From: Eutreptiella sp. 'Long Island Sound 2002' | Lineage: Eukaryota; Protista; Euglenida | NCBI GenBank assembly: GCA_964036045.1 | Contig: OZ038378.1 | Location: 18,290,001 to 18,354,000, forward strand | Direction of reading: 5' to 3' | Length of the DNA: 64,000 bases | Part shown: piece by piece, positions 17,791 to 63,980 of the stretch | Layout of the letters: the number at the start of each line of letters is the position of its first letter | Numbering within the stretch: the first letter of the stretch is position 1 | Position numbers and translations under genes: made by a program | The notes under the pieces: model-generated | The model's input: only the letters and a program-made list of their open reading frames with translations | Database searches by the model: none | What the model was told of the DNA's origin: nothing

Positions 17791-17893
17791 TGAACCCTGA
17801 CTTCGCCATGATGATACGCACGGAGGTATGCACCCCATTCCGCACGGCCCCAGGCACCGCAGCCCCCGCTGACAGGCGTTTGCAACTTCATAC

Positions 17894-34138: not shown

Positions 34139-37100
34139 TTGATGGCCTAATCCCCCCTACACCCGATGACTACTCGCGTCTCTCCTCACTGGCAATCCAA
34201 GCCATATCAACGTGGCACCCCCCTCCGTTTGTATGCGAACAACTGCGTCTCCGACAGTCTGCGCTCCTTGGGGAACGTATCTGCCGGATTAATTCCACTG
34301 TGGAATGTCTTTTGCCCTTTAATCACCATCCTGATGCAAAGCGGCTGCTTGCGTTAGCGCATACTCTACAAAAGGGACTGCTGTCGCTACCAATATTGGC
34401 TAACACCTGTGAGTTCTGCGCCGCCCTATCGTTGTCGGACCCCAAGACCACTGAGCGATACCTGAACTCTGCCCTGACCGCGGTCTCAGCAGAATGCGCG
34501 TACCGAGCTCACCAACGCAAGGCTGTAATGGCCAACGGCCGCGGCTACTTTCTTGCACCACATGCTTCTGTCTTCCAAGTCGCAGCGACGTGCCCAACGA
34601 TAGGCACCCCACTTGGACCCTGTAATGTTCTCCATGCTTTCCGAGAATTTCTCCAGACCGCCCCCGCCCTCTCACAGATTTTTTCACACTGGTGCGATGC
34701 TAACCGGATATACTCCTGGTTTAATGTCCGACTGTCCACCATTAATAGCTTTATAGACTGCATTGTAACAGACATCCACGCGTGGGTGTCCATGGCCTCG
34801 GCTGGCCCCACCCCATCCTTCCTGTCTACCAAGTGGTACAACGCCCTGTATTCCGCACTCCACGTGTGCTCCAAGTGGTCCCCTTTCTTCACACTTGGCC
34901 CCATGCTGCCCGCCCTCCACACACACCCACTATCACACCGGCTACGTTCACTGCCGTCTGTCTACACTCCCGATCTCTGCACAGCCACACAAACGTGGTC
35001 TGTCCAATGGGATCTAGTCAGACGAATTTTCCGTTCCGTCATAGGCCGTGGCAACCAGTCCCATCAGTGCTTGGTTCTACCATCAACCCCTGAAACCATT
35101 AGGAAAATACTCATGATCGCACGCCTGACCAAATCACACACACACAGGTTGGCTGAGGACCTGTGTTCACCGGATTTGTTCTCTGGACTCCAGTCAGATA
35201 CACGGTTCATCCTGTGGGTAATTTCCAGCAGCCCCCTCCACCCACACACCCGGCAGCGTGCTATTGCGGTACTCCAACCCATGTGTAAAACTGCGTCGGG
35301 TTCCCCCTCCCCCCAAGCAGACCTGATCCATAGCCTCTTTGCACCAGGAGAGCACTGCACCAAAAATCCCCCCTATCCCAATGAACCCCCAGCTGTCGCC
35401 CAAGAACCATTCACTGACCTATGGCACCGCGAAACTCAGATCAGAAGGGATGCGCTTGCACCAAGCTGGAACCAGCACACACGCCGTGTAGTCCACAAAA
35501 AACAGTGGCCAGCAATTTTCCGCTCATGGGACCGGGTTAACCAAAACCTCCACTCCGCTACACCAGCCCACCTACGCAAGCTACACGCAATGAGACTCAC
35601 CACCCAATCTGTCTTCACCCCAGGCTGCTGGGTTTACGCCCTCTGGCACATTGCTGACGGCCGGGTGTATGTTGGACAAACTGGCGGGAGGGCCAACCTA
35701 CGTAGCGTAGCGGAGCGTGGCCGAGAACACGTTAGGCTAGCTGCGGATTTTCTCAGACTGAACAACGGCAGGCGCCTGTGGCTCCCCCAAAGTGTCTACC
35801 GCTGGATGATGCAGCGGGGCCCCGAAAATTTCGTTATCACCCCTCTAGAATCCTGCCCTCCTGATACCGTCACCCAACGCGAGCGTTTTTGGATGCTCAA
35901 ATGGGGGGTCGGTAAATTGTTTAACATAGACATTCCCTCGCTGTCCAACAACCGATGGGATTTTCTCCAGTCCAGAAAGGTGTGGAAAAAAGAACTTGAA
36001 GATAAGGGCGGGTCATACCTCAGCTATGCCCGCAGCATCCTGGCCGCTGGCCAATACATCCCCCCCGACAGGCACCCACCACCGCTACTCCTAGCGGTAC
36101 TACAAAGCACCAGCCGTTACCTCCCAAGCAGCGACCACAAACGGCTGTTTGACATGGTCGCCTCGCTTTTTGCTAGACAGTTTCATGTAAAAATACCCTA
36201 CAGAATCACACTAAAAATACCATTACTGACCACCGCAGACAAAAAACACCTACACCAGAAAATAGCGACGGTGATTGACACCGTCGATGCCTGGCCCCCC
36301 TACCTACGCTCATACTTGTCATCTCGCATCTTCATTGTATCCAGGCGCACACCTTCTGTTTTTGCGGCACTGTCCCAACAGCCTGTAGCTACATGCCCCA
36401 CGCCTGTGCTTGATGACACCCCGGCGCCCCAGTGTCCCTGCTCCAAGTGGCTCAAGCTCCCAGGTGTCGGGAGTATCAACGGCCACGCGGTATTCCGTGA
36501 CCCACGAATCCTTGAGACCCATTGTGATTCACGCCCCACACGGAAACGATGTGATACCTCCATTTTCCAGCAAAATATGAAAAATGCTGTCGTCCCTTCC
36601 CTCAAATCCCTGAAGCATGATTTGGTAGACAGTCTGCGAAGCCTTGCCACCTCCCTCCCAGACCACCAGACGTCTGTCGCACACAAGTGCATTGCAGACA
36701 TAGCCTCTACATGTGCCACGACCTATCATGCACTGGCCAGCTCCCATCCAAAGACAGTATATGAACCGTACATCAAGAAACACGGTCAGCGATTGCCTGA
36801 TGGTATCGTCTGTACAGTATTGGACAAAGCACCACAGGTGCCCATTTTTTGCTGTGCTAACGTGTGGCGTCACATACACAGCACAACTTTCCTCCAGTCT
36901 GGCCGATTCCAGGAGCTGTCCCGCTTTCCCACGAATCGGGATGCACAATGCTGGCTGTACTGGGAACTGGCTGACTCAATTTCTTTGTCAGTGCGAGGCG
37001 AATACTGTGCGTTTAGCGTGCTTCATGGCGTGTCCCCTCTCCCTGCAAAGGACCTAGCATTAGCATACCAGACATACCTCTCCTACCCCTCGTCACCGCA

Positions 37101-38030
37101 TATGAAAAGGAACCTGTCCCCCCTCCTGGATGGTTGCTGTACTAAACTAAAGTTGTGGGGGCCAAGTGCGAGCCAATTGCTGGCCCCAGGAGCGCCCACT
37201 ACTACCGCCCTGCTTCACCGAGCTGAACTGAAGGCCTTAGCTAACCATACCACTCTCCTCCCTGATCCCTCACTCCCCACACCCACACAGAACCCGGGAG
37301 CTGACCCCCCACCACAAAGAGGCCAGAGTGCACGCCGAGGTCGCGCACCATGCCGCCCCACAATCCCCCCACTCAGGCGCGTCTCAGCGGCGGGTGTAAC
37401 CCAGCGACGTCGGTCTGGAAGACCTCCACCGATACTGGCTCTGGATGAACAAATCTGCGCACTGGAACGTGCAGTCATACACTCCTCCGGGGAGGGACGC
37501 ACCCATAACCCCGAAACCCCGGCCCGGCCCCACCCCATGCATCGCTTCCTTAATGCTACAGCCATCCCTAATGACGTACCTGCAGACATCACAATGTCGT
37601 CAGGCGTCAGCCGCAAGCCACCCCCCAAGCCACCGGAGAGTGACAGGCCCAAACCAAGGTCCTACCACCGGGCGACACGTTTTGGCGTACCGGATGCCAT
37701 GGTCATGCTTAAGCATAAGTTTCAGGAGTGCACCCCCCAAGCGAAAATCAAGGTTCGTGAAGTTATTAGGCACGGCGGTAACCCCTTCAAACGTGTGGCG
37801 AAATTGATGAGTAGATGCCTGTCTGTGCTATGGAAATTTGTTACTGCCCACCACTCCTCCATTGAGATCATGGCAATGCATGAGTTACGCGGTTTTGTGG
37901 AAATGCTACGCGAATCACAGGCCCCCCACAGTGGATCGTTCTGGGGCGAACTTGACGTGGAGGAAATGTTTCCGAACATACCCAAACACCTCATCCCCAC
38001 GGCGGTTCGGTTCTACTGGGACATGATGTG
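34078..38030 (+). CDS. ORF2: GIY-YIG endonuclease followed by the N-terminal half of a Penelope-type RT (truncated after motif A)
   Basis: WVYALWHIADGRVYVGQT...RGREH...LESC...RERFW (GIY-YIG); VLDKAP, LKHK, ELDVEEMFPNIP (RT motif A). The frame is stop-free from 34078; motifs B' and YxDD are missing. Confidence 0.85.
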
Positions 38031-38555
38031 TGTCCTCATCCCCAATCCTTTGTACGTTCCAGCCCCTCTATAGATTCTGCACAACAGTTTTTAACCCAGG
38101 TAAAGCGCACCATATCCTGTGACTCTACTTTGAAACTCACAGTCGAAGGGTGGGGACAGTCCATGCCATTCCTTGACTCTGAGGTGCTCATCTCTGGAGG
38201 TTTACCGAATATAGAGGTCAAGCCACCCGTGTTTGCCACTGCCCCAGGGGACTCGCAGCCGGCAGCACACCGCCGACTGCTTGACTGTCAGTCTCCGAAC
38301 TCCCAGCGCATGCTCCTGTCACTCGTGCCGAACCTGGTTAAAAAATGTGCCTGGTATAGATTTGACACGTGTAGTTTCATACAAAATGTACATAAGGTTT
38401 CATCTCTCCTGATCCGAAAAGGTTACCCTTCAACCTGGTGGCGCCCTTTGCTCCTAGCAAAAGCGGAAACCATTGGTCTACAACAGCATGCGAGGTCAGG
38501 TATCCAACTTGCACTTGCACAACTGCACGGACCCGGAGCGGGAGAATCGAACTGA
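38028..38555 (+). pseudogene. RT C-terminal/thumb segment of the Penelope-like element, frameshifted by an internal deletion
   Basis: PFLD...KGYPSTWW parallels WCD...KGYPWKWW in the second element (48935-51199). Confidence 0.75.
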
Positions 38556-48213: not shown

Positions 48214-48945
48214 CTAGTGGCAGCTGGGGCTGCATCCCCTTCTTTGTGGTCTTCTGCCCCAGTGGCAGCTGGGGCTGCATCCCCTTCTTCTTGTGGGCTT
48301 GGGTCGCCTTCTGGGGTTGCTCCTTCTGGTGCCTCTTCTTCTTTCGGGGCTGCTCCTTCTCCTTCTTGTGGCGTGGCCGCTGGTGCCTCTTCTTCTTGTG
48401 GTGGGGCTTCTTCTTCCTCCTCTCTTCTTCTCCCTCTCCTTCTTCTTCCTCTTTTCCTCCTCATCCTTCTCCTTCTTCTTCCTCTTTTCGTCCTCTTCCT
48501 TCTTCTTCTTCTTTGCTTCGTCCTCTTTCTTCTTGGCCTGTTCCGCCTGACGTTGGACTCTGTGTGCCGCCTGTGCCATCAGCTGCTGGTCGGCAGTCTT
48601 CTGGGCAAGGACCTTTCCAGGCGGGTGGGGGGGCTTAGCGGTGTGGGAGGCGGAGATGGCTGGTGGTAGGTGGCTGGTGGCTGCTGGCTCCTCGGTACGC
48701 TTCTTCTTGGGCCTTGGGACTGTCACGGATTCCGTCTCCGGCACGGCAAAGGCGTCGGCCCAGTCCACCTCCAGCTCCTCCAGCTGCCGCTTAGCCCGGG
48801 CCAGCACCGGGGAGGGGCCTTGCTCCTTCCGTCCGTCAAGCCAGTCGGCCGCATGCTTGGACTGCCCGGCAATGTCCGCGGGCACGCTGATCATCAACGG
48901 CCCTCTGCGGGATCCCAGGCACAGAAGCTGCTCGAAGCTGCCCAC
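48214..48945 (-). pseudogene. 3' part of a decayed K/E-rich minus-strand gene (probably the accessory gene of the CACTA-like element)
   Basis: RAKRQLEELEVDWADAF, KKKEDEAKKKK... low-complexity charged ORF ending near the CACTA terminus; frameshifts present. Confidence 0.5.
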
Positions 48946-51199
48946 CTACGGCTCCCAACAAGCAGCAAAGCACGCTGTACGTCAGGCCTGTGAGCAACTA
49001 CCCTGTAACTGCCAGAAAATGCGCCATAAATACCCAGGCCTGCTGCAACCAGGCCAAGACCATGTGGTCATCCGCACAAAGGAACAGTGGTGTCAACTTC
49101 TGAACCCACTGGAGGTGGCCTGCATCACCCAAAATGCCCGTAACACGACGCTACCCGACGACGAGTTCGTTGAGCAATGTATAGCCCGCCTGCGTGATGC
49201 ATGCTCGCCTTTCACACACACGCACGGCAGTGACCTGCTGCAGGCAGAGTCCATAAAGCGCACAATCCATCAGTCCAATGCTCAGCACATTTCCAAGTAC
49301 CCCTGGTACGACGCATCTGTTTTTGCCTCCATTAACGACACACTGTCCGCGCTCCACGTACAGACTGCAATCTGGGATAAGGCGCCATGCAACATACACG
49401 GCACGTGCACTGTACATTATCAGCGGGCTCTGGCCACCTTGACTGTCACTGACCCAAATTTCAGCATTGTAGCTGTGGAAACAGTACCTGGAGGGGCAAA
49501 CCGCCTGGTGATTGATCAGGTCATCCAGTCAGCAGACAGGGCAGGGGTATTACGCCTGGGGAAACGTGTGGGGCTGTGGCCTAAGTCACTCGATACACCC
49601 GCAAAATTGAATGCACACGTACGGAAAAATGTGACGGCGCGCACCTGGCGTGCGCCCACAGCTTTCCACCTCCTTAAGTGGAAGACCAATGAAAAGCTGT
49701 CCGATTGGAAGTGGCGCCTCGTAGTGAGTCATGCTCGCCACCCGCTGCGACGCCTGTCTAAGCTTGTTGGCAGAGGACTAACCCTCCTGCTCCAGGAGTT
49801 GCATGCAGTGTTTCCCTACTGGGGCTGCCCGACGATGCGAGGGGTCAGGGATGTGTGGAAGCACCTGCAGCAGGACAGACCGAAGGTGCTGGACCTTTGG
49901 GAGCGTGATATCGACAATGCGTATTGGGAGTTAAATAAAAAACGCGTGTTAGAAGCGGTGCGCACGGCAGGGGCCCTGGTGAAACAACGACGACGTGTAC
50001 GCGGCACGCTGAGTTTCTCCATTGCGAAAGGCGGATGCAAGGCCCTGGACCGGGTGGGTGAATCGACAACGCGCAACTACAGGGTGCTAACCCTGGAGGA
50101 CCTTGTCATGTTTGTTGACTGGGACCTGAACCAAAATACCCTCTTTGAGGTATGGGGTGTTGCACTCCGCCAAGCGAAACGCGGCGTGCCCATTGGAGGC
50201 TTTCTCAGCGCACAGTTGATGTGCCTGTGGGCCCTGGTACAGGAGAATACGTTTTTCAGTGATCCAACGAAGGAAAAACTGATCAGCGCAGTGCGCACCC
50301 AATGGCCCAGGCAGTGGGAACCTGTTTCTGTGAAGCCTGGTCCGCAGCTCACGTTTCCCTCCGTGGCCTGGGTGCCGCGGGACATTTCAGTTTTGCACAC
50401 ACACGGTATGCACGGCTGGTTTCAGCCAGAGGCACGCCTGCTGTTCACCTTGATGTTGCAGGGCCACCAGATCAAGTTTTATGCCATGAATTTGTGGGAT
50501 AGCCATCCGCTGGGGAGGACAGGGAAGATCGTTGATCAGTCGATACCCAAACAGCAGTTTTTCTTGCGCGGGTATTTTGCCAACTTGAATATCACACAGT
50601 GCATGCTCGCCGACATGCGTGGCGATGGTACAGTGAATGAAGAACAGTCTGTTCTGCTCACACGGTACATGGACAACATGTACCAGGCAGTGTGCAATGT
50701 CCCTACACACATACACGCGCGCCTCAAACGCTTTCTGGAGATCTTACAACATGTGGTGTATAATATAAAGATGAAGTGGGAACCTGAAGGTTTGTCTGTG
50801 GACTGGTGCGATGCACGCCTGCACTCCAATCCAAAGCTGGACCTGACCATCAAGGGTGTGCCCATTGGGGATGGTATAGCCCCCGTGGTACACTTATGGG
50901 CACGTTGGCCCGATGTGTGCTCACAAAACTGTCCCACGGTCTTGCAGTCTATGTTACCCTCCCTAACCAACAAATCCTGCGAGCTGGCAGGGTCCACGCA
51001 TGCCATCAGGTGCAATATACGTGCTGTCATTCAGGGCTGTGGATATAAGGGATACCCTTGGAAATGGTGGTGGCAACCAATGCGGGCGCGCCTCCAAAGG
51101 TTGAACCTCCAACACCATGTACCCTTATGCCAAGTGAAACAATGGTACAAGCAAGGATCCAGCTGGGCGGGCAGGGTGGGTCATTCACTGCATGCATAA
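48935..51199 (+). CDS. Penelope-type reverse transcriptase (open frame, YMDN at motif C)
   Basis: ERDIDNAYWEL (A), QAKRGVPIGGFLSAQL (B'), TRYMDN (C), VDWCD, KGYPWKWW; stop at 51199. Confidence 0.85.
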   Translation, partial: KLPTYGSQQAAKHAVRQACEQLPCNCQKMRHKYPGLLQPGQDHVVIRTKEQWCQLLNPLEVACITQNARNTTLPDDEFVEQCIARLRDACSPFTHTHGSDLLQAESIKRTIHQSNAQHISKYPWYDASVFASINDTLSALHVQTAIWDKAPCNIHGTCTVHYQRALATLTVTDPNFSIVAVETVPGGANRLVIDQVIQSADRAGVLRLGKRVGLWPKSLDTPAKLNAHVRKNVTARTWRAPTAFHLLKWKTNEKLSDWKWRLVVSHARHPLRRLSKLVGRGLTLLLQELHAVFPYWGCPTMRGVRDVWKHLQQDRPKVLDLWERDIDNAYWELNKKRVLEAVRTAGALVKQRRRVRGTLSFSIAKGGCKALDRVGESTTRNYRVLTLEDLVMFVDWDLNQNTLFEVWGVALRQAKRGVPIGGFLSAQLMCLWALVQENTFFSDPTKEKLISAVRTQWPRQWEPVSVKPGPQLTFPSVAWVPRDISVLHTHGMHGWFQPEARLLFTLMLQGHQIKFYAMNLWDSHPLGRTGKIVDQSIPKQQFFLRGYFANLNITQCMLADMRGDGTVNEEQSVLLTRYMDNMYQAVCNVPTHIHARLKRFLEILQHVVYNIKMKWEPEGLSVDWCDARLHSNPKLDLTIKGVPIGDGIAPVVHLWARWPDVCSQNCPTVLQSMLPSLTNKSCELAGSTHAIRCNIRAVIQGCGYKGYPWKWWWQPMRARLQRLNLQHHVPLCQVKQWYKQGSSWAGRVGHSLHA

Positions 51200-51332: not shown

Positions 51333-51713
51333 CTGTGGCTGTGCCAGTTGTTGTTGTTGTTGCTGCTGTTGCTGGGCCATCTGCACCCGCTGCTGCTGCT
51401 GGAGCAGCTGCAGTGTTGCCTGCTGCACGGCTGCCTGCTGTTGGAGCTGCTGCTGCTGCACTTGCTGCTGCTGCGGCTGCTCCTCGTCCTTGACCGCCGT
51501 GGTTTTGACTTTGGCGCCGGTTGCAATTGCCCTTGCGGCACTGGCTCCTCTTTTGGCTGACCCCCGCATCAAACTGGCACCCGCACTTCTCACCGAGGCG
51601 CACTCGTTCTTGAAGGCCATTGCCCCCGCGTCGGTCGCGTTGATGAAGCTCGGTGGGTCCTTGTTGAAGTAGAAGTGGTGGACGGTCTTTGCGGTGGCAC
51701 CCGGAGGCGTGTG
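51333..51713 (-). pseudogene. Middle part of the decayed minus-strand gene (HTPPG...polyQ)
   Basis: Joins 63425 in frame once the 51714-63424 insertion and one TSD copy are removed (GYVRT|HTPPGATAK). Confidence 0.65.
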
Positions 51714-52100
51714 TGGGATGCAGCGTTCTAGGGCGTGGTGCGGAACCCCCCCAATTTTTGGTGTTGTTAATATGGTTGGAACCCGGAATTTCACATGTTA
51801 CATGGGTGCACTATGATGCAACAATGTGCCTTCCATGTTTCGTTTGCTCGATATTGCCCGTTTTGCACTTTTTGCGATTTGATCTTTGTGTGCTCTAACT
51901 AGTTATCGCAGGGTTAGAACGGGGTTAGAGCACTAGTTATCGCGTGGGTTATCGCGCGATAACCTAGTTATCGCGGGGGTTATCGCGGGGGTTATCGCGC
52001 GATAACCTAGTTATCGCGTGGGTTATCGCGTGGGTTATCGCGCTTCATTTTATGTTTCCCCTTTTCGCTGTAGCTCTCAAAGCTTTCATATTCTTTGATA

Positions 52101-54221
52101 ATGGCCCTTGCTGCTGCCCACGCTTGGTGCGAGCACCATCAAAAGCTCCTTGGGGTCCGTCGCCTTGGCGGTCCTGAGGGGTTTACGATGGGTGATGCCA
52201 ATGTGAGGCGCCCTGTGGCGACCCGCTTTGAACATGGTGTGGACTTTGGACTCCTTGTCCATAAGTCCCCCTTCATGGCGGACAAGCGAGACCCCCTGGT
52301 TCTCAGCAACTACATCTTCGAGTTGCTAGAGGTAAATCCAGGGGTTGCTGGATTTTTGATCCAGCTTCATCCGGACGATGTGGACGCCGTGGTGGAGTCC
52401 GTCACCGCCCATGCCGAGAAGGGTGCGGGGACGAAGACGACCCTCTATGCGGGTCAGGAGGAGGAGGAGGAGGAAGTGGAGGAGGAGGAGGAGGATGCGG
52501 GGGGGGTGGGGGCTGGGGGGAGGAAGGAGAAGCCCCACAACCCCCTCATGATGAGTGTCCAGAAGGTAAGGATCCGACCGGGCAAGGGGAAGGGGAAGTC
52601 GGATGGTTGGTTCCTCCAACCCCTCACCCACAACACCCGCCGGGTCTGCACTGACGACCCCGAAAACAAGCTCCCCATGCACTCCCTTTGCCCCACAATG
52701 GAGTGGGAGCGTGAGTGGTATGGGATCACCACTCCCAACATTGTTTCGGGGCAGGGGGTGATTCTTTTTCCATTTGGGGCAACACCCCCCCTTATTGGGG
52801 AGGCGGAGGAGGTGGTTGCCGCCCAGCCCTTGGGGGCCTTTAATAGGGACCCCAATGACCTTGTGCTCACGGTGGGGGGAAAGCTGGTGGTCAACCACCT
52901 CCTGGAGCACGATTTTTTGAGTGATGTGCAGCTGCAAAGTCTTTTGGATGATTTGGATAGGGTGCCTCTCTCAGAGAAGGCACCCATTTTCAATGAGAAC
53001 CTCCCCATTGTCGGCAGGCCCCAAGATTCTGGGACCCGCCGTACATTGTATGGCAACTATGGGGGTGCCAACCACCACAGGCACAACCCCCACAAGCTCC
53101 ATGATCTGCCAGTCCTCAAAAGGGTGGCAGATCGTGTGCTTGAGACGGCGAAGAAGACTGTGGTGGGGGGGGTTGGATGGAGCTGCACCATCCTTGACAT
53201 GGCCGAAATTTCGAGCTATGACCACACCCCCCAGCACCTCCATCGCGACGCCCCCCCCTACACCATTCCTGAAGGCACATTGATTGTCAATTGCCTTATT
53301 ATGCTAACCCATAATCATGAGGAGGAGGATGGGTCACATTTTCTTTTGGTGCCCTCCAGCAGTTCGGGGTTCCCTGACCCTTGGGTGGAGAGGGCTGTGC
53401 CATTCAAGAGGGGCACTGCCTTTTTTTTTAATGCCCTTGATGTCCACAGGGGGTCGGGGATTCCCAAGGCCTCCCCCATGGGGGTAAGGGACCCCCGCCT
53501 CATGGCATTTTTTGCCATTGAGCTTACCCAGGGGGGGAATCTTCGATTCCCCAACCTGCACGTGACGCAGTCCATTAAGAGGCCCCAGCTGGGGGCACCT
53601 GCTGGCCGGGTGGCTAGGACAGTCCAGTGTGATGGGGCGGTTAGGTGTAGGGTGAAGGTGGTAGCCAATTGCTACGGATGCAATCGGCTGATTTTGTGCA
53701 CCGCCCACAAAGATGGCCTTTGTGTGCCATGCCAGGAGGGGGAGGAGGTGGAGGGGGGGGAGGAGGAGGAGGTGGTGGTGGACCCCAATGGGGTCAGCAT
53801 TGAGCAATCTGCTCAGTGCTTGCTCCCGGTGGGAACAACCACCGGGCATTTTTTGTTGTCGGGGTGGGGGATTGGGAGGGAGGTGATTGCCCCCCTCACT
53901 AATGAGGAGGCGGGGGCGGTCGCAGGCCACCCCGATCAGTGCCCCTTGGCCAAGGTGTGCCATGGGGAGGCACTGCCCTGGCCCACCTTGCAAGGGCATG
54001 TTGGGATGAAGGTGCCGGTGGGCACCATTTTGGTGGTGAGGAGGGGGTTGTATGGGGGAGTGGCAAGGGTGGCCCCTGAGGTGGAGGGGGTGGCCCAGGT
54101 GGTGGAGTGGCGGCAGGTGGGGGAGTATGCGGCCGTCACGGACTTCGTGTGGCTGCGGAGGCTGGGCCTGGTGCTGGACGACGCCAAGAAGGAGGGCCAA
54201 GGCATGTGTCCATGTCACCAG
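52101..54221 (+). CDS. Cargo gene exon 1: PhyH-like 2OG-Fe(II) oxygenase domain plus Cys/His cluster
   Basis: PQHLHRD...LLVPSS...GTAFFFNALDVHRG...DPRLMAFF (HxD...H...R); CDGAVRC...CYGC...CTAH...CVPC. ATG follows a ttttcgctgtAG acceptor (52072-52073); donor CAG|GTGTAA at 54222. Confidence 0.85.
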
Positions 54222-54463
54222 GTGTAAAAACTTCCCACAACACCCTGCTCTAACCCCTGCTCTAACTAGTTATCGCGCTAGGTTATCGCGTTCTAACTAG
54301 GTGCTCTAACTAGTTATCGCGCTAGGTTTTCGCGTTCTAACTAGTTATCGCGGAGTTATCGCGGGGGGTTATCGCGGGGGTTATCGCGCGATAACCTAGA
54401 TATCGCGGGGGTTATCGCGCGGGTTATCGCGTGTTTTTTTTTTGTTTTTTTTGTTTTTTTCAG

Positions 54464-54948
54464 GCTACCATCTTGCAGCTGCCCCGCATCTTCGTCAAGG
54501 ACGACGCCCAGGCAGCCGAGGCAGCAGGCGGAGCGGCAGAAGCAGCGGGGGCACGGCCCGCCAAGCCGGTGGCGGCCCGGTTGGAGCTGGAGGGGGAGAA
54601 GAGGCTGCCGGAGGGGGCGTCGTGGCGGTTTGGGGAGCCTGGGGACGAGGCCTGCAGGATGGGGGGGACGGGATGGTACCGGCAGGTCACCATCACAGAG
54701 AAGGAGGGGGGGGTGGAGAGGAAGACCAACCTCACCCTCCCCTCCTATGTGTGGGTTGGGGGGGAAACGGCCAAGTGGCCGCAAGCCGCAGAGGGGGAAA
54801 CGGTTGCGGCTTTTTTGTGTTTGTTTGGGATGAGCGACCCCCCCCAAAGGAAATCTTATTTCCTTTTGAGGGTGTGTTTTTTGTGGGAGGGGGAGTATAC
54901 GGGGAGGGAAGTGTGGCAGAAGCTGCACAGGGGGGGGGGCATCCACCA
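54464..54948 (+). CDS. Cargo gene exon 2, 5' part (ATILQLPRIF...GIH)
   Basis: Long T-tract plus AG at 54462-54463; phase 0 matches exon 1; interrupted at 54949 by a nested element. Confidence 0.78.
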
Positions 54949-56086
54949 TGTACCCTTCGTGAACCGGCCGTTTGAATCCGAGATTCACGGTACCGTGAAT
55001 TTCACCTATTTTTGCTGTGTTTTGCTCGTAACTTGGTGCTATCGTGTGCTTTTGTCGTGCTATCTTCGCCCAAAGTAAGATCCAACAAATGTGTGCAATT
55101 TACAGTTTTGAAGTAGCCGCATGGTTCAACACATTTGGTGAGATCACCGTGAATGTGAAATTCACGCACCCAAATTCACGCATAAATTCACGCTAGATTC
55201 ACAGATTCACAAGAATGTGAAATTCGCACGAATTTCGTACGAATTCGTACGAAATTCGTATGAATTTCGTACGAATTTCGTGCGAATTCGTACGAATCGG
55301 CCCCAATTTTGTCTTGTCACTGCTATTTGTTGCACACATTGGATATTGAACAATTCCTTTTGTAGATCCTTAGATACACGCTAGCACGCACAATTTTGTT
55401 CTAGCCTAAAACGACATCGCGAGGGCGTTCTAGCCTACAACATCTAGCTAGAACGTAGACTAGAACAGGAATCATTCTAGCCTAGATTTGTTCTACACTA
55501 GAACACACATAACAAATCAAACCATTATACACATTACATTTCTTATGCTTTGTTGCGTTGCTCACAAATTTGTTGGGAAGGGCATAGGTTATAGGTGATA
55601 GTGGATGCAGTGGTGGGGGGTCCATTCTGGTCAAACCATTGTTGCATTGCTCACACAGTTGTTGGGAAGGGCAAAGGTGATAGTTGCTAGTAGATGCATG
55701 AGGGTGGGGTGGGGGGGTCCATTGGGTCAAACCATAGGAGCGTAATCAACCACGTCTAGGGTTGGGAGGGGGGGGGGGGGGCAAGGAGACCCCCACTTAC
55801 ACCTGAGTGTCTGGGTGTGGGGTTAGGAGGGTGTCTTGCTTGTTGCAGTGCGGTTAAGGTTAGGGAGGGTACTCCTTTTCTCTTCACAGGTTTTTTCTAC
55901 GTGCGACCATGCACAAAATGCAGCAATGTGCAAGCAACCATGAAGACAAATTACAAACATGACACAGACAGCAACAAGCACACAGAGCAATCAACAGCGC
56001 AGACCAATCACCATATTATTTCTACGTGCGATTGGGTGCATCCAGACTGAGGTATGTTGCGTGTAGTTGTTTCGTGCTGCCACATA

Positions 56087-56141
<55 letters not shown>

Positions 56142-58144
56142 CCTCGGGAACTGTGGTGCATGAAATAAGGGGTGGCCCCCCAGTGATCGACCAGGGGGGG
56201 CGCCAGCCCCCCCGGGAGCTTCTTTGGATATTGCGGTACATGAAAGAAGGGGTGGCCCCCTCCTCCTGTGTGTGTGTGTGTGTGTGTGTTTGTGCGGTGT
56301 GTGTGTGTGTGTACATTGCTGGTGTGTTGTCTGCCTAGAGGGGCATTCCGCTTCGCTTCACAGGTGGACAATTTCAACGCTGATGGACCGATGGACACAG
56401 GTGTGTTTCCTTTTTTTTTTTTAAAAAAAAACAAAACAAACAAAGAAATGGACAAACGGTACAACACAGGGTTAGCCAAGGAAAACACAATGGGTGGGGC
56501 ATGTGTGGGGCATGCCTAGTGCAGTGCAATACGCACGTGGCCGACAAGATGGAGTAAATCCCCCAAGTGATCAGGGGGTCCCCCATGTGCGCAGGGGGTT
56601 TTTCAATGGGGACGACCCACGAATGAGTGGGGGGGCGTTGTCCCCAGGGGCCACATCTGTAAATCCCCCAAGTGTTCAGGGGGTCCCCCATGTGCAAAGG
56701 GGGTACTTTTGATTTCATACAACAACAACAACATGTGCGGTGTGTGTGTGTGTGTACATTGCTGCACTGTATGTGTGTGTGGGTGCCGGGGGGGCAGGTA
56801 TAGGGAAATGTGTGTGGGTGTGGGGACTCCGGTACATGCATAGGTGGTGTTGGTGTGGCTCTTCTGCCAGTGTCCTGCAAAAATGGTGCGAGATTCGTAC
56901 GAAGTTCGCACGAAATTCGTACGAAATTCGTGCGAATTTCGTACGAATTTCGTACGAATTTTGTGCGAATTTCGTACGAATTTCGTACGAATTTCGTCCC
57001 TCAATACGCGGTTGTTACGAATTTCGTACGAATTTCGTACGAAATTCGTACGAAGTTCAAACAATTTGCATGAATTTGTGTCATTTTTGTGTGTGTGTGG
57101 GTGTGCCTGGTCGGAGGGGTTGTTGTTTGTGTGGGCGTGGGTGCATGGTGTGTGCGTGCCTGGGTGATATGTGCATGCATTGGTGGTTCTTGGGTTCTTG
57201 GGTGGTTTTGTTGAATCATGTGGGACAATACTTTTGTGTTGTTTGTAGTTTGTGACTGTCTGTCGTTTGTGTTTGTTGCTGTCGAATGTCATTATGTGGG
57301 TTTAATGCCTGCTTTTCGACTGCGTTGGTATCGCTGTTTTGCTTGCTGCCTGTTGTGCTTCGTCTGTCTGCTGCTCCTCACTGGTGACTGGTGCTGATGA
57401 CCTGACTGTGTTGTTCTTCTGTGTTGTTGTTGTGTTGCTGTGCTGTGTGCTATGAGTGGGTGTGGATGGTTGGATGGGTGGCTGCCTGTTGTTGAATCAT
57501 GTGGGACAATACTTTTGTGCTGTTTGTAGTTTGTGACTGTCTGTCGTTTGTGTTTGTTGCTGCTGATTGTCATGATGTGTTTGTAATGCCTGCTTTTCGG
57601 CTGTGTTGGTACCGTTGTTTTGCTTGCTGCTTGTTGTGCTTCGTCTGTCTGCTGCTCCTCATTGGTGACTGTTGCTGATGACTTGACTGTGTTGTTCTTC
57701 TGTGTTGTTGTTGTGTTGCTGTGCTGTGTGATATGGGGTGACTGTGTTGTTCTTCTGTGTTGTTGTTGTGTTGCTGTGCTGTGTGCTATGGGCTGAGTGT
57801 GTTTGTTCTGCATAAAAATGATACAAATTCATGCAAATTGGTCGAAATTCGTACGAAATTCGTGCGAATTTCGTACGAAATTCGTAACAACCACATTCAC
57901 GGTACACTTTGGGGACGAATTTCGTACGAAATTCGCACGAAATTCGTACGAAATTCGTACGAAATTCGCACGAATTTCGTACGAATTTCGCACGAATTTC
58001 GTACGAATTTCGTGCGAAATTCGTGCGAATTTCGTACCATTTTTGCAGGACACTGGCAGAAGAGCCACACCAACACCACCTATGCAATAACGAAGTCCCC
58101 ACACCCACACACATTTCCCTGTACCTGCCCCCCCCCCCCGGCAC

Positions 58145-58179
<35 letters not shown>

Positions 58180-58511
58180 GACACACACACACACCCATGC
58201 ACAAACACACACATACCCTCAATGAAAGCAAACAGCCCCCCATGCACTCGACCCACACCCACACACTGCCCGCTCACACACCCTCATACGTACCTGGACA
58301 GTGGATGTGCCACGGTTAGATGTTTAGGGGGGGGGGGGGGTTCTGTGTGTGTGTGTGTGTATGTGTGTCTGCCTGTGTGTGTGGATGGGTTTCTGCAGAT
58401 GTGTGTGTGTGTGTGGGTGGGTGGGTCGTTGTGTCCATGTGTAGTTGGGTGTCCGGTTGTGTGTGTTTGTGTGTATGCGCGTGTTGGTGTGAGGTGCAGG
58501 AAGGGTGTGTA

Positions 58512-58547
<36 letters not shown>

Positions 58548-59547
58548 GCTTGTGCGTATATCTGGTTTGGTGCTCCTCACACCCTCACCCGCCCCACACA
58601 CAAAGGCGCACGCCCACACCCATAACCAAAAAGACAGTCATACACCCCCCCCCCCACACAGAGACACACACACACCCATGCACAAACACACACATACCCT
58701 CAATGAAAGCAAACAGCCCCCCACTCGACCCATACCCACACACTGCCCGCCCACACATCCTCATACGTACCTGGACAGTGGATGTGTGTGTGTGTGTGTG
58801 TGTGTTGATTGGTTTGTGCGCGTGGGTGCGTGTTTGTGTGTGGGTGTGTATCCATGGGTCCGTGGTTGTGTGTGTGGGTGTGTGGGTGTTGGTGTGAGGT
58901 TTGGGGCGGGTTTGTGTGCGTATGTGGTCGGGTGGCCCCCACATCCTCACACACACCAACACACAGACGCACGCCCGCACGTAGAAACAAACAGGAAGTC
59001 ACGCATCCACCCACATGCAAACCCAACCATACAACCATACACAAACCCACACAAACCCACACACCCCACACAAAGGCACACCCACACACATGTGCACATG
59101 TTGCCTGTAGCCAGGGTGCCTGCAGGGGTGTTTGGGGGGGAGGTACCCCGGGTGTTAGGACAAATGAGGGGGTGCACAAGGGTGAAATTGGTATGAATTC
59201 ACGTGAATTCACGTGAAATTCGTACGAAATTCGTACGAAATTCGTGCGAATTCGTGCGAATTTCGTACGAATTCACGTGAATTCACGGCCGTGAATCGGC
59301 TACAGGCTTGCCGGGTTCCGGCACCTCTCGTTTTGGGTACGGTTCGGACATGATGGATGCTTTTGGGGCGGGACTTTCATTGGATGATGCGTAACGAAGC
59401 TAGGGGAGGAATTTTGGTTCCTCAAATCCCTCGGAATGAACCAATAATATGGCATTTTCCCCCAAAAACCTCAAAATTTGGGTAAATTCACGTGAAATTC
59501 ACGCAATTATTCAAACGGCCACTTAACGGCCGTTCACGAAGGGTACA
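54949..59547. mobile_element. 4.6-kb non-coding TIR element nested in the cargo gene
   Basis: 16-bp perfect TIR TGTACCCTTCGTGAAC; 2-bp TSD CA (54947-54948, 59548-59549). Interior holds AATTCGTACG arrays (about 55148-55296, 56892-57056, 57845-58035, 59196-59293) and GT/CA microsatellites. Confidence 0.88.
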
Positions 59548-59549
59548 CA

Positions 59550-60274
59550 GGTTGGTGGGTATGACCCCCCCCCTTCTGTGGTGGACGCCACTGCCGATTG
59601 GGTTCGGCAGTATGCACCCAAGGGGGGAATGCCGCGAAAAGGCCAGACGAAGCGGGGACCAGACGTGGTGGTGGTTGAGCCGGATGCCCCCCCCTCCCCT
59701 TAGGGGTAAGGGCCAAACCCCCGCCCCCAAGCCCTCCCCCAAGCCATCGAAGGTGGCAAAGGTGGCGGCAGCCCAGCCCCCCCATGAGGCCCTGGACGTG
59801 GAGGCCTTGGGGGCCAGTGTGGCCACCCACGTGACGGACGCTTGCCAGGTTTTGGTGGAGCAGGCGGCCGCCACGGGGGTCGAGGCCGCACTGGCCAAGG
59901 GTCGGTCGGCCGACCACAAGTCGGCCTTGGCGAAGGCCGAAAAGGCCCAGGGCAACACCCAGCGTGCCCTGGACCAGGCCCTCAACCTCGCCGCCAAGAG
60001 GGGGGAGGAGGTGGAGGCGATGAGGGAGGCCCTGAGGGAGGCCCAGGAGGGGAGGCGGAAGGCGGAGGTGGAGGCGGCCCAGCTTAGGGTGGAGGTGGAG
60101 GGGCAGCGGAGGAGGGGGGATGACCTTGGGCAGCGCTTGGGGGTGGCTGAGGCGCAGGTGCGCAGCCTCACCTCCACCCTCTGTGCCTCCTTCGGGGCGC
60201 AGCAGGCCCAGCAGGGGCTGGCGCCGCAAGGGTTGCAGAGTCAGGGTAGCGGGGGTAGGAGTGGGAGCCAATGA
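59550..60274 (+). CDS. Cargo gene exon 2, 3' part: Pro-rich linker and coiled coil
   Basis: The empty site gives GIH-Q-VGGYDPPPSVVDATADW...; one 1-nt shift in the C-run near 59687-59694 links it to KVAKVAAAQ...EAMREALREAQEGRRKAEVE...SGSQ*. Confidence 0.7.
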
Positions 60275-60910
60275 CTAGTGGATTTGCTCAAGGGGTTGCC
60301 CAAGGGCATTTTTCGTGGGGAGGAGCGATATGGGGCCCAAGTGGACATGTGCCACTTTGGCCTTGTGGGAAGTGGAAACCCCAACCCCTCTAATTTTAGG
60401 GCGACTCACATGGCCGCTGCTACCGTCAGGCCTGCCCTCACCCCCTTGGTTGCAGACCTCAATGGGTATTGCACCTCCAATGCTCCACCATGGTTCACAT
60501 GGTGTAGCATCCAAATTGTTCGCCCCCAAGGGACGGACACCATGGGCCTCCACTCCCATTTGCGGGATGGGGCGCCCATGGCGCTTATTGTGTGTGTGGG
60601 GTCTTTCACGGGGGGTGAGTTTTGGGTGGAGAGTGGTGGCCTGCTGAATCCCTCCTTGAGGGAAAAAAAGCGGCACACGCGTGTGTGCAAGGGTAGGGCG
60701 GTGGAGGGTTGGGCATGCACCGCCACCCTTCAAGCCCTGGTGTTGTTCAACACCAGGGCACTACACGCTCCATTGCCATGGGAGGGCGAGCGATGGAGCG
60801 TGATTTTTTATAGTGCGGGGGGGGTTCTGCACTGCACGCCTGTGTGGCGGCAACAGCTGCTGTCCATGGGTTTTAGGGTGCCCAATGCTTCCTCTAACCC
60901 CTCCAGCTAG
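60275..60910 (+). CDS. TET/JBP-like 2OG-Fe(II) oxygenase domain, in frame after a single TGA
   Basis: WCSIQI...LHSHLRD...IVCVGSFTGGEFWVE...VLFNTRALHAPLPWEGERWSVIFY (double-stranded beta-helix pattern H...H...R.S). Family assignment is by motif recognition only. Confidence 0.72.
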   Translation, partial: LVDLLKGLPKGIFRGEERYGAQVDMCHFGLVGSGNPNPSNFRATHMAAATVRPALTPLVADLNGYCTSNAPPWFTWCSIQIVRPQGTDTMGLHSHLRDGAPMALIVCVGSFTGGEFWVESGGLLNPSLREKKRHTRVCKGRAVEGWACTATLQALVLFNTRALHAPLPWEGERWSVIFYSAGGVLHCTPVWRQQLLSMGFRVPNASSNPSS

Positions 60911-61381
60911 TGTTATTTGTGATTCGATTATTGTTCACTATTTCTATTACTGTACTCTGTGGACTCTGAGGAGGGGCAACTAGCCCGGAACATGTCCATT
61001 TGACTGATTTGAATTTGTGATTGTGGCGCCATGTACCCCGTGCCTGCACATTGTTGACATCTCCAAGGTTTCCTGGGTGCAAAATCAACGTTTGTGAAGG
61101 TTTTAGGGTGCCCAACGCTTGCTCTAACACCACCAGTTAGTGCGCACTAACCCCTGCTCTAACTAGTTATCGCGGGGGCTATCGCGCTCTAACTGGGTGC
61201 TCTAACTAGTTATCGCGGGGGGTTATCGCGCTCTAACTAGTTATCGCGGGGGGTTATCGCGGGGGTTATCGCGCGATAACCTAGTTATCGCGGGGGTTAT
61301 CGCGTGGGTTATCGCGTGTGTTTTTTGGGCCCTTGCTTCAAAACCCTCCCTCATTTCGTGTCCCAGGTCCTCTTATTCTTC

Positions 61382-63042
61382 ATGGACAGTGCTGTCAATG
61401 AGGCCCTGCGGGCTCTCAACACAGCTAACCTCCGGCGGTACACCGATCTGCAGTGCCCCAAGGCCCGGCGGCGGCGTTTGAAGGCGGTTCAGCGGCTGGT
61501 GCGAGTTCTATTGGGTGACCCAGACGTCGTGTGTGGCACCAACACCAAAGGCGAAGTTTGTTTAAGTGGTGGGGCGTGCACTGCCCTGTCTGGCCCACTT
61601 GGCGGCCATCTTGCATTCACAGCTGAGGAGCATGAGGCCCTGAGCATGCTACGCATGGCATGCAGCATGCATCTCTCCCAACGGGCCCTTTTGCGAATGC
61701 CCCGCCGTTGCACACAACGGGACCTAAGGACCGTTCGGCAACGGATCATGCCCTACTTTCCCCAAACCACCATTGTAAAGTCTACCACAGGCCGCAATAG
61801 GGCAGCTGCCCATGTGCCTTTGCAATCAATTGTGCAAAATGCAATATCTATGGCCCGAGTTATTGGGAAACCCCCCCCTAGTGGCGTTGCCATTATTGTT
61901 ATTTCAGTTGATGCGACTTCCTTGTGGAAGGCATCCTCTACCCGTGCGGATGTATGGGTTAATGTATGGGGGGGGGGGCAAAATATGCTTCGAAGGTGAA
62001 GCTATGGGCCTCATGGTTTTGCATGGATGGCGGGGATGAACAGGCTTTTTTGAGAAGCCTGGACATCTCCGCCAACCTCAACCAAGAGGTGAGGGATGTG
62101 GAAGAGGACGTTGTCCTCTTTCAAAACCAATTTTTGACTTGCACTGTCATTTTGACAGGGGATGGGAAGGGGATGCAAGCAATGGGGGGGGCTGGGTCTA
62201 AGTGTTGGTTGTGCAAAGACCCCAACGGGATTGTTGAGCAAATGGGGGTGGAGTCCACCTCAAGATGGGGGGCATTCTTGAGAAGTGTGACCCCTGATAG
62301 GCGGCCGGGGGACTACCAACATGCAGCATGCCGCATCCTAAACGGCATTGCAAAGCGCATTGAGACCACCCTTCAGGCCCTCCCCCCTGGTACCCCTGGT
62401 AAGGCCCAAGCTCTTGCAGCTCTGCAGGCCTTCAAGCAAGCCCTCAAGGATGAGACCTCAGGCATCCCTCTGAGGGAACGCCTCCCTTCGGCCTCGAGGG
62501 CCACAGAAAAAGATTTCGATCTAACAAGCACCAAAGTTTTCCTAACCTCCCCCCCCTTCCAAAGGCAATTTGTGGATTGCCTCAAAGAGCATGTCCCCAC
62601 AGCGAGGACCCCTGGGGGACCTATGTTATGGGTTGTTGTGCATGTCATGGTGAAATGCATTGAGGGTTTGTATGAGCTTTGGAGGGTGAGGGAGTTGTAC
62701 ACTCTAACCCAAGTGGAACGCCACCGTGCGTTGACCACAAAATTTTCAAAAGCGTGGGGAGACTCAAGTTGGTCCCCCACCAGGTGGATCCATTGGTGCT
62801 TGGCACATTCCACCTTTTTTGCGCAGAAATGGAGGAACATTTTTCAGTTTTCCTCCATCCCAACGGAGTATCGGCATGGGCCTTACAAGAGGAGGCTCAA
62901 AAATTGTTTTAAGGGTTGGTCCTTGGTGAGGCCAAGTATGTCCCTCCGCCACATGCACCATTGCATGTCCATGAACGCCCTGGACCAAGGGCTTTTGGGA
63001 CTGGAGGCAGCCAAGGCCTCAGACATTGATGACTTTGTATGA
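61382..63042 (+). CDS. RAG1-core/Transib-like DDE transposase (about 553 aa; 1-nt shift in G11 run at 61968-61978)
   Basis: ISVDAT (D1), LTGDGK...SKCWLC (D2 plus ZnC2), DYQHAAC, WIHWCLAH (ZnH2; RAG1 YFHKTLAH), SSIPTEYRH (E). ATG lies about 15 nt after a cccAG acceptor (61365-61366). Confidence 0.85.
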
Positions 63043-63424
63043 AAAACGACCACACATGCTTTGTGCCAAGTGTTTTGTGTTGTTTGTCCTAGGGAGGGAG
63101 GGAGGAGGGGTGCGCGATAACTACCCGCGATAACTGCGCGATAACTGAGTTATCGCGCGATAATTAGCGCGATAACTAGTTAGAGCAAGGTGCTCTAACT
63201 GCGTTCTAACTCTGTTCTAATTGTGCTCTAACTGTTTGACCCCCCCCCCAAAAAAACCACCCCTACGATGAGGGTTATGTGGGGAAAGAAAGGGGATGGG
63301 GGGTTTTTGAGGGTGCTGAATCCATTTTTTAGGTGGTTTGCCCCAAAATTGAGGGTAGGTGGGTGTTCCAGAAATTGCGTTCTAACTAGGGGTTCCGCAC
63401 CACGCCCTAGAACGCTGCATCCCA

Positions 63425-63980
63425 TGGGTCCGAACGTAACCCCACCCATAACTTGCCCAGCACGAGAACAGCAGCTCGTACTCCTCCACCTTGCAGTGTC
63501 TACAGGCAGCTTGTCCTTCTTGGGTTGGCACGGAGGGGTTCAACAGGTTGTGGAGACTGCACCAGGTGCCAGTAATGCTCTCGTCATACCAGCAGGGTTT
63601 CACGGCTCCGTCTGGGATCTTGGCAATGGCCGTGGCCCTTTGGCGCCAGAACTTGTAGAAGGCCACCTCGAAGAGGTAGGCCGGTGCTGCTGCTGCTGCT
63701 GTTCTGGGCTGCCGACTTGCTGGGCCGCAGCCTGCACTTGCTGCTGCTGCAATTGTTGCGGCTGCTGCACTGGCAGTGGGCCGAAGAGCACTTGTTGCAC
63801 TTGGCCCACTGGAAGACTGCCGCGCACTGGGGAGCCCAAGGTGGGCGACCCACCGGGGAACAGCATGGGAGACAGCTGCTGTGAGGCACCTCGTAACGGG
63901 GATTGCGGCGCGGGCCACAGAGGCTGAGTTGGGGAGAACTGGGTCAGCTGCTGGGACAGCGTCTGCGGAAAACAGGACAA
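63425..63980 (-). pseudogene. 5' part of the decayed minus-strand gene (Q/P/S-rich, then Cys/His-containing segment)
   Basis: The Q-rich frame shifts to PAYLFEVAFYKFW...WCSLH...CRHC...GYVRT; continues at 51713 and probably beyond the window end. Confidence 0.55.

Follow-up and report, generated by a model that had tools for sequence, protein, structure and literature searches.

A multi-gene transposon from Eutreptiella with a predicted RAG1-fold transposase and a putative PhyH-type dioxygenase

What kind of mobile element pairs a RAG1-like transposase with Fe(II)- and 2-oxoglutarate (2OG)-dependent oxygenases, and to which families do these oxygenases belong? The question is posed by Eutreptiella sp. 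'Long Island Sound 2002', where a 64,000-nt stretch of contig OZ038378.1 (assembly GCA_964036045.1; hereafter the window) contains an element at positions 51714-63424. An initial annotation described it as a RAG1/Transib-like transposon whose single spliced cargo gene encodes two dioxygenase domains, one PhyH-like and one TET/JBP-like. Our analysis, which compared it with seven other family copies from the same ENA assembly (L001 and L004-L009), leads to a modified view. With a probability of roughly 75%, we consider the element to be an inactivated member of a multi-gene cut-and-paste transposon family that is high in copy number, was recently active and belongs to an uncatalogued lineage of the CACTA/Mirage/Chapaev/Transib (CMCT) clade. 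Its lineage, its non-fungal host and its putative PhyH-type partner gene look new.

Element boundaries and the predicted transposase

The ends of the element are marked by a 36-bp terminal inverted repeat (TIR), TGGGATGCAGCGTTCTAGGGCGTGGTGCGGAACCCC, which occurs exactly twice in the window, once in each orientation (Table 1), against a chance expectation of 0. The TIR begins with TGGGATG, and the element termini are 5'-TG..CA-3'. The full span of 11,711 bp falls to 7,112 bp when a nested insert is subtracted, and the empty site of that insert is present in L001 at 8168/8169 (...CCACCA/GGTTGG..., with the slash at the junction). The exact TIR pair and this empty site bear out the length, the value of ~7.1 kb without the insert and the perfect TIRs given in the initial annotation. 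Flanking dinucleotides are identical in all eight complete copies (TG in the window, CA in L001, TG and AT in L004, TG in L005, TT in L006, TG in L008 and AT in L009); because the chance of such a match is 1/16 per copy, a 2-bp target site duplication (TSD) of variable sequence is settled. A restored host reading frame was considered as additional support for the 2-bp TSD and was dropped, since two of three frames are open through the CAG-rich flank.

Full-length copies measure 7,060-7,142 bp and are ~98% identical in pairwise comparisons. When proteins are clustered at 90% identity, the intact 552-aa transposase has 275 members and the second domain described below has 235, and 9,538 contigs from one sequencing run map to the right half of the element. 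Taken together, the identity, cluster sizes and contig count argue that the family is very abundant and was recently active. L006 represents the intact copy type. Some copies have lost internal sequence but retain intact ends and TSDs, such as L004 9161-12040, which keeps the transposase alone.

The copy in the window is defective. Its transposase gene contains 11 G at 61968-61978, where the seven other copies have 9, and the two extra G break the gene into two open reading frames (ORFs). In addition, the accessory gene ORF2 is split by the nested transposon at 54948/54949. Because of the +2 G frameshift, no transposase can be made from this copy, which, with ORF2 also split, is dead; because its ends are intact, it could still move in trans. 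The same 2-base difference in the G run is also present in read contigs, and the extra G may alternatively be a long-read homopolymer error rather than a true lesion.

The transposase escapes recognition by sequence profiles. Neither the intact 552-aa reference (P0005) nor any of 40 relatives matches a Pfam family at E<=1, including RAG1_RNase_H, RAG1_ZnC2 and RAG1_ZnH2. Scans of NCBIfam and PHROGs gave no match for the transposase, and its alignment profile retrieved nothing from PDB sequences at E<=10. A profile search of 1.84 billion representative proteins returned 993 relatives at E<=0.001. An AlphaFold model built from a 41-sequence alignment has a predicted local distance difference test (pLDDT) score of 89.3 and a predicted template modeling (pTM) score of 0.82. 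When this model was searched against PDB with Foldseek, the first 49 matches were all RAG1, BbRAGL (amphioxus) or HzTransib (Helicoverpa), with E values of 4e-11 to 7e-6, and the next was the P element transposase (E 4e-3). VIA-align places model residues 80-546 on RAG1 459-1008 with a Z score of 23.1 over 423 residues, followed by HzTransib (21.7), BbRAGL (20.0), the P element (14.9), and ISCth4 and Hermes (8-9). As modeled, the transposase superposes on the whole RAG1/Transib core, so the comparison of folds comes out in favor of the proposed relationship.

The candidate active site is consistent with this superposition. The candidate catalytic residues are D177 (61910), D260 (62161) and E495 (62866), with D177 located at the end of the first strand of the RNase H fold in the predicted model. 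Candidate zinc ligands, C274-x2-C277 and H470-x4-H475, lie between D260 and E495. The motifs D, D, CxxC, HxxxxH and E occur in this order and are kept in 41 relatives and down to ~30% identity. H470 and H475 are 5 residues apart, and H475 and E495 are 20 residues apart. In mouse RAG1, H937, H942 and E962 have the same H-to-H (5) and H-to-E (20) spacings. Given the conserved residues, the matching spacings and the fold, the earlier alignment of the transposase motifs with the RAG1 core holds.

A RAG1-like core does not by itself define a Transib element. Transib elements are defined by a 5-bp TSD and CACWRTG heptamer ends. We find the RAG1 core architecture here, together with a 2-bp TSD and TGGGATG ends, and neither the heptamer nor a RAG1/Transib profile match. 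Predicted-structure searches place the transposase among unnamed rotifer and cnidarian clusters (template modeling (TM) scores of 0.67 and 0.66), nematode DUF1280 (0.62), Transposase_21/CACTA (0.61) and RAG1 (0.56), with Plavaka clusters also among its fold neighbors. Its language-model neighbors are a mix of RAG1, Plavaka and Transposase_21. The whole CACTA/EnSpm-Mirage-Chapaev-Transib clade, with Plavaka, ESTA and Lanisha included, has the C(2)C and H(3-4)H motifs in common, together with a RAG1-like profile, and is characterized by TSDs of 2-5 bp and by 5'-CA..TG-3' termini "in most cases" (Kojima 2025, PMC12730594). Mirage has a 2-bp TSD, and PlavakaA, with a 2-bp TSD and TGT..ACA ends, is an exception to the CA..TG rule (PMC12730594). 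The element in the window has the motif arrangement of this clade and a TSD within its range, whereas its termini are TG..CA. Because of the 2-bp TSD, the TGGGATG ends, the lack of a RAG1/Transib Pfam match and fold neighbors that span the CMCT clade, we conclude that it is not a Transib in the strict sense, although the RAG1/Transib fold extends over the whole core. Fold prediction and motifs instead place the element in an uncatalogued lineage of the CMCT clade with a RAG1-fold transposase.

Like Transib, RAG1 and RAGL proteins (4WWX, 6XNY, 6PQX, 6B40), the modeled transposase has the whole-core fold (Z 20-23 over ~420 residues), the Asp-Asp-Glu (DDE) triad, the CxxC and HxxxxH zinc ligands and the H-to-E spacing. 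Unlike them, the element has a 2-bp rather than a 5-bp TSD, TGGGATG ends and no RAG1 Pfam match. It also has no RAG2-like gene and carries two extra genes. With CACTA/En-Spm and Mirage it shares a multi-gene organization and short motifs arrayed near the ends in both direct and inverted orientation, and with Mirage also the 2-bp TSD (PMC12730594). It differs from these elements in its non-CACTA ends, the absence of a Transposase_21 match and its putative oxygenase accessory genes in place of a TnpA-like protein. The relatives of RAG1 and Transib gain a well-defined lineage with a 2-bp TSD and TG..CA ends, which helps to root the origin of the V(D)J recombinase.

Accessory genes, a conserved stop and motif arrays

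Gene 1, whose ORF is intact in the window copy, appears to encode a PhyH-type Fe(II)/2OG dioxygenase. Residues are numbered in the 710-aa ORF that starts at 52095. Pfam PhyH (PF05721) matches gene 1 weakly (E 0.025; 15.3 bits versus a cutoff of 22; profile positions 12-202 of 213), and codons 274-453 also give a weak 2OG-FeII_Oxy_3 match. Among the 100 Atlas clusters nearest to gene 1, 67 carry PhyH. More decisive is a metagenomic contig, L011, in which a transposase 36% identical to P0005 adjoins a homologue of gene 1 (BLASTP 8e-25 over 407 residues). This homologue scores above the Pfam PhyH threshold (27.9 bits, E 3.4e-6) and retains the H-R-D motif, the distal H-R-G and the Cys/His cluster, at which a weak IBR-like match is also found. 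H383-R-D385 and H451 are invariant across the window, L006 and L011. The L011 homologue argues for a PhyH-type dioxygenase that has long accompanied the transposase and against an accidental capture of gene 1. Of the two dioxygenase domains proposed initially, the PhyH-type domain is therefore retained, and the PhyH-like region, the Cys/His cluster and the coiled-coil region are all present. For the TET/JBP assignment of the other domain we found neither sequence nor structure support. In two metatranscriptome contigs (runs X3 and X4), sequence ~92% identical to the end of gene 1 runs into unrelated sequence after 54224 (GTTGAACGAATTGG...), which points to a subfamily in which gene 1 is followed by a different region.

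The initial annotation had joined gene 1 to the following coding region as one spliced gene. The interval between them, 54222-54463, opens with GT and closes with a long T-tract followed by CAG. Spliced out, it would be a phase 0 intron that links gene 1 to ORF2 in frame; otherwise it is an intergenic spacer containing a splice acceptor. Each of the three coding blocks (starting at 52101, 54464 and 61382), however, comes after a motif array, a pyrimidine tract and AG, and three separately processed units therefore fit equally well. In four estuarine metatranscriptomes, contigs 95-100% identical to the element span portions of every gene; none contains a joint across 54222-54463, and none is informative about readthrough at 60272. 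A search of the window for the dinoflagellate spliced leader found nothing. With no RNA contig showing the joint and a conserved stop downstream, the single spliced cargo gene was not confirmed and is no more than a possible reading of the sequence.

In intact copies, ORF2 is a single ORF of ~399-442 codons that extends from the end of the second motif array to the TGA at 60272-60274. Its second half is coiled-coil-like, with a weak match to ATG16. The TGA separates the coiled coil from the second domain, whose reading frame is that of ORF2. Three copies that are 70-80% identical (two in L002 and one in L003) preserve the stop, the context around it (CAA-TGA-CTA/CTC) and the common frame; stop and frame are also conserved in L006. 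The 23 codons from the stop to the first ATG diverge in a coding-like manner, with synonymous changes such as CGA -> AGG. A ratio of nonsynonymous to synonymous substitution rates (dN/dS) of 0.19 relative to L003 (176 codons) points to purifying selection on the second domain. Reassignment of UGA was rejected, as the transposase gene itself terminates in TGA. The stop codons are TGA-A for the transposase, TAA for gene 1 and TAG for the second domain, which means that UGA genuinely terminates translation in the host organism. A 33-nt GT..AG mini-intron spanning the TGA was also rejected, given that its 3' AG is lost in L002 and L003 while the stop and frame are kept. UGA-CUA(G) is a known leaky stop context. 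We infer programmed readthrough at UGA-CUA into the second domain.

The second domain is probably a 2OG oxygenase, judging from its sequence features. In 210-aa numbering, it contains the pattern H94-x-x-D97 (H94-L-R-D97) ... H163 ... R172-x-S (R172-W-S). The residue order fits 2OG oxygenases generally, and the first spacing, H-x-x-D versus the canonical H-x-D, is atypical. Its Atlas score is 0.96, with 213-215 of 256 features in common with clusters whose automatic name is Fe2OG dioxygenase. The 100 nearest Atlas clusters comprise 37 named Tet_JBP, 3 named 2OG-FeII_Oxy_3 and 60 without a name, with Oxy_3 as the best named neighbor, and the structural neighbors of the first Atlas match are 2OG oxygenases. 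Scans of the second domain against Pfam, NCBIfam and PHROG yielded no match. Pfam Tet_JBP (PF12851) did not match any of 12 second-domain copies at E<=10, and the second-domain profile found nothing among PDB sequences at the same threshold. A tblastn search of phage genomes gave chance-level matches only, searches for homologues with the single sequence and then with the alignment retrieved only copies from the same genome, and hhalign detected no similarity to the PhyH domain of gene 1. The AlphaFold model is poor (pLDDT 28.6) because the alignment, made up of 12 near-copies, is shallow. Membership of this domain in TET/JBP is unproven, and language-model similarity is what suggests a 2OG oxygenase at all.

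Each coding block is preceded by an array of a short motif. The GTTATCGCG motif, of the palindromic GTTAYYGCG type, has 35 exact copies in the window versus 0.16 expected, all of them within the element. These copies form four clusters, at 51936-52042, 54269-54431 and 61166-61316 (mostly + strand) and at 63113-63176 (mostly inverted), the outer two lying 220-250 bp from the element ends. L011 contains nine copies of a different motif, GTTACTGCG (0.02 expected), partly as the palindrome GTTAnnGCGCnnTAAC, in two clusters, one before the transposase and one before the PhyH gene. Such a fixed layout with a varying motif suggests sites bound by a protein that the element itself encodes. In En/Spm (CACTA), TnpA sites are subterminal and in inverted orientation. 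By analogy, we infer that the arrays may serve as end-recognition platforms and promoter-proximal elements. Another distant transposase relative (L012 408-1250, 36% identity) is preceded by an array of ~45-nt repeats of other sequence (GGAAGGGTCACCAGACCAGGAAGGGGTCCAGGAAGCG...), and the lineage as a whole may carry repeat arrays ahead of its transposase genes. A further copy, L003 9809-11715, is ~70% identical and still has the second domain and the conserved TGA; its right TIR is diverged and ends ...GCATCCCA. This copy contains no transposase between the TGA and the right TIR and no GTTATCGCG motifs, and it is either a member of a related family or a non-autonomous derivative whose subterminal repeats differ.

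Mechanism, alternatives and known dioxygenase transposons

These observations allow us to outline how such an element would operate. The transposase would bind the TIRs, probably together with the subterminal arrays, excise the element by RAG1/Transib-like DDE chemistry and integrate it with a 2-bp stagger. The internal arrays may be promoter or regulatory platforms for an element-encoded DNA-binding module, and low-level readthrough of UGA-CUA may add the second domain to the coiled-coil protein. By analogy with TET/JBP enzymes on fungal transposons, the dioxygenase or dioxygenases could act on chromatin, DNA or RNA to counter silencing of the element.

Several points weigh against a multi-gene CMCT transposon with a dioxygenase partner. 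To our knowledge, the only structures solved in the CMCT clade are those of RAG1 and Transib members, and there is no solved CACTA, Mirage or Chapaev transposase to compare with. Because none of the 41 transposase members has a Pfam match, clade placement is drawn from fold and motifs only. The termini are TG..CA, while most CMCT lineages end in CA..TG (PMC12730594). A distant transposase family from the same genome (L013 and L014; ~30% identity, decayed) has no recognizable partner gene within 10 kb. The second domain has no hidden Markov model (HMM) or structural support and contains H-x-x-D in place of H-x-D. The metatranscriptome contigs do not prove transcription, because the TIRs and flanks are covered too, and the contigs could derive from DNA or read-through.

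One alternative, which we consider improbable, is the initial reading, a RAG1/Transib-type transposon with one spliced cargo gene that fuses a PhyH-like oxygenase to a genuine TET/JBP oxygenase, which would rewrite 5-methylcytosine or thymine marks of the element or the host. RAG1 and Transib are indeed the best structural match, but Transposase_21 (CACTA), DUF1280 and unnamed groups have TM scores at least as high as that of RAG1, and the 2-bp TSD and non-heptamer ends misfit Transib. The GT-AG interval 54222-54463 is in frame and has a long pyrimidine tract; against this stand the conserved stop between the domains and the absence of spliced RNA among the metatranscriptome contigs. As for TET/JBP itself, 37 of the 100 nearest Atlas clusters and the H...D...H...R-x-S order speak for it, whereas Tet_JBP is unmatched in 12 copies even at E 10, PDB sequences give no match, the best named Atlas neighbor is 2OG-FeII_Oxy_3 and the motif reads H-x-x-D. 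In another alternative, 60275-60910 may be a conserved domain of a non-oxygenase fold, translated on its own or by readthrough, whose H/D/H pattern is coincidental. This reading is possible but doubtful. It would explain why no HMM library matches, why hhalign sees no similarity to the PhyH domain of gene 1, and the H-x-x-D spacing; the AlphaFold pLDDT of 29 also fits it, although the shallow alignment of 12 near-copies accounts for a poor model. The Atlas score of 0.96 with 213-215 of 256 features in common with Fe2OG dioxygenase clusters argues against it, as do the structural neighbors, which are 2OG oxygenases, and the fact that, out of the 100 nearest clusters, each of the 40 with a name belongs to a 2OG family.

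A different alternative concerns the role of the dioxygenase protein, which, instead of serving as anti-silencing cargo, could be an integral transposition cofactor comparable to TnpA of En/Spm or to RAG2, with its Cys/His cluster on the GTTAYYGCG arrays and required for synapsis or excision. The linkage of gene 1 to the transposase in a 36%-identical relative, where arrays are kept with a co-varying motif (GTTACTGCG there, GTTATCGCG here), is what such a cofactor would predict, and the subterminal inverted arrays recall the TnpA sites generally known from CACTA elements. We nevertheless regard this role as unlikely. Copies reduced to the transposase (L004 9161-12040) bear TSDs and hence transposed, possibly in trans; the distant family in L013 and L014 shows no partner gene; and retention of the H-x-D...H triad over such a distance argues for an enzymatic role beyond DNA binding. 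A bolder extension, which we put forward with low expectation, is that the element represents an unnamed, superfamily-level RAG1-fold lineage (~1,000 representative metagenome proteins) whose transposase co-evolved with a PhyH-type dioxygenase/zinc-cluster protein and with arrays of the CpG-containing palindrome GTTAYYGCG at the ends and in front of each gene, the oxygenase or oxygenases working on these arrays, or on chromatin covering them, so that promoters and ends stay unmodified and active. If true, the element would be a "self-demodifying" transposon complete in itself, on a different plan from the fungal TET/JBP transposons.

We return to the CMCT transposon with a putative PhyH-type partner and place it among known dioxygenase-carrying elements. 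TET/JBP genes are known on Kyakuja-Dileera-Zisupton (KDZ) transposons and also, in fungi, on elements of the hAT, Harbinger, IS3EU, Helitron, EnSpm, Plavaka and ESTA groups; for the ESTA transposase, HHpred gives a match to RAG1 (Kojima 2025, PMC12730594). Owing to this report of fungal ESTA, EnSpm and Plavaka cases, the claim that a RAG-like transposase with TET/JBP-type cargo had not been described is outdated. The fungal ESTA, EnSpm and Plavaka TET/JBP transposons belong to the same broad clade and likewise combine cut-and-paste transposition, a RAG1-like transposase and a 2OG-Fe(II) dioxygenase gene; PlavakaA also has a 2-bp TSD and TGT..ACA ends (PMC12730594). The element described here differs from the fungal TET/JBP transposons in its non-fungal host and in that its dioxygenase is putatively of the PhyH type, not TET/JBP. 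Unlike ESTA, EnSpm and Plavaka, it has no Pfam Plavaka or Transposase_21 match, an extra coiled-coil ORF with a stop-separated domain, and motif arrays before each gene. KDZ elements are similar in concept, as transposons bearing a nucleic-acid dioxygenase, but have an unrelated transposase family, and Zisupton has an 8-bp TSD (PMC12730594). Our literature search turned up no report of a PhyH-type dioxygenase associated with a DNA transposon, nor of dioxygenase-carrying CMCT-clade elements outside fungi.

To date, documented transposons that carry their own DNA- or chromatin-modifying oxygenase come from fungi, and the enzyme is TET/JBP in each; the same strategy appears here in a non-fungal microbial eukaryote, with a different oxygenase family, putatively of the PhyH type, that is linked to its transposase across a deep divergence. 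The hundreds of near-intact copies have clear ends, and copies of the L006 type offer a tractable system. On this system one could test the function of a transposon oxygenase, whether the arrays are targets of that enzyme or sites for the transposase, and whether UGA-CUA doses the second enzyme.

Nested insert, feature coordinates and neighboring sequence

The 4,599-bp insert that interrupts ORF2 is an unrelated non-autonomous transposon. Its ends are TGTACCC...GGGTACA, flanked by a 2-bp TSD, CA (54947-48 and 59548-49), and its TIR occurs exactly twice in the window. Palindromic CGTACGAAATT-type repeat arrays lie near both ends, together with (GT)n tracts, and a further inverted-repeat (hairpin) element occupies 56837-58086, with arms at 56837-56997 and 57926-58086 that are 94% complementary. 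The insert shares the integration signature of its host element, TG..CA ends and a 2-bp TSD, and was probably moved by a transposase related to that of the main element. The nested family is also found at different positions in other copies of the main element. In L007 its right end lies at 5931-5946 and abuts L007 5947 (equivalent to window 52712), and a metatranscriptome contig joins a nested-family end to window 52998. The family is either very abundant or favors the main element as a target.

Table 1. Features of the element in window coordinates
Feature	Coordinates	Strand	Basis
Left TSD copy (TG)	51712..51713	.	TG at both element flanks
Left 36-bp TIR, 5'-TGGGATG start	51714..51749	+	Exact inverted match to 63389-63424
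Left subterminal GTTATCGCG array, 10 exact copies, mostly +	51891..52052	+	Ends ~59 nt before gene 1 ATG; repeat families D9, D11
Gene 1, putative PhyH-type 2OG-Fe(II) dioxygenase, with Cys/His cluster and C-terminal region of unknown fold	52101..54227	+	ORF, Pfam, Atlas, L011 homologue
PhyH-like double-stranded beta-helix domain, codons 274-453	52914..53453	+	Pfam, Atlas, L011 homologue
Cys/His cluster of gene 1, codons 512-546	53628..53732	+	Kept in L011 homologue
GT...AG interval with long T-tract before AG; holds motif array 2 (54247-54441)	54222..54463	+	Sequence, motif positions
ORF2, first part	54464..54948	+	Continuous ORF in L006 and L001 across the interruption
Nested unrelated non-autonomous transposon, 4,599 bp	54949..59547	+	Empty site in L001
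ORF2, second part, coiled-coil region, ending at TGA 60272-60274 in CAA-TGA-CTA-G	59548..60274	+	Conserved stop and frame
Second domain in ORF2 frame, candidate 2OG-Fe(II) oxygenase	60275..60910	+	Atlas features, dN/dS
Motif array 3	61144..61326	+	Ends ~66 nt before transposase ATG
Predicted RAG1-fold DDE transposase gene, 552 aa when intact	61382..63042	+	ORF, homologues, model, motif conservation
Right subterminal GTTATCGCG array, mostly inverted	63113..63190	-	Motif positions
Right 36-bp TIR	63389..63424	-	Exact inverted match to left TIR
Right TSD copy (TG)	63425..63426	.	Matches left flank dinucleotide

Outside the element, an Rfam scan of the window gave no match, and three ORFs on the + strand have no Pfam match: 32885-34138 (417 aa), 34300-38073 (1,257 aa) and 48641-51199 (852 aa). 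These long ORFs may be host genes or belong to other mobile elements. A full-length copy in L008 is adjoined by a Ty3/gypsy-type retrotransposon polyprotein at 13868-18745 (-), with RVT_1, RNase H and integrase domains and a faint chromodomain. In the window, a 499-aa ORF at 23137-24636 (-) has a clear piggyBac-type transposase domain (Pfam DDE_Tnp_1_7, E 2e-23), and genes similar to it are located near the copies in L001 and L009.

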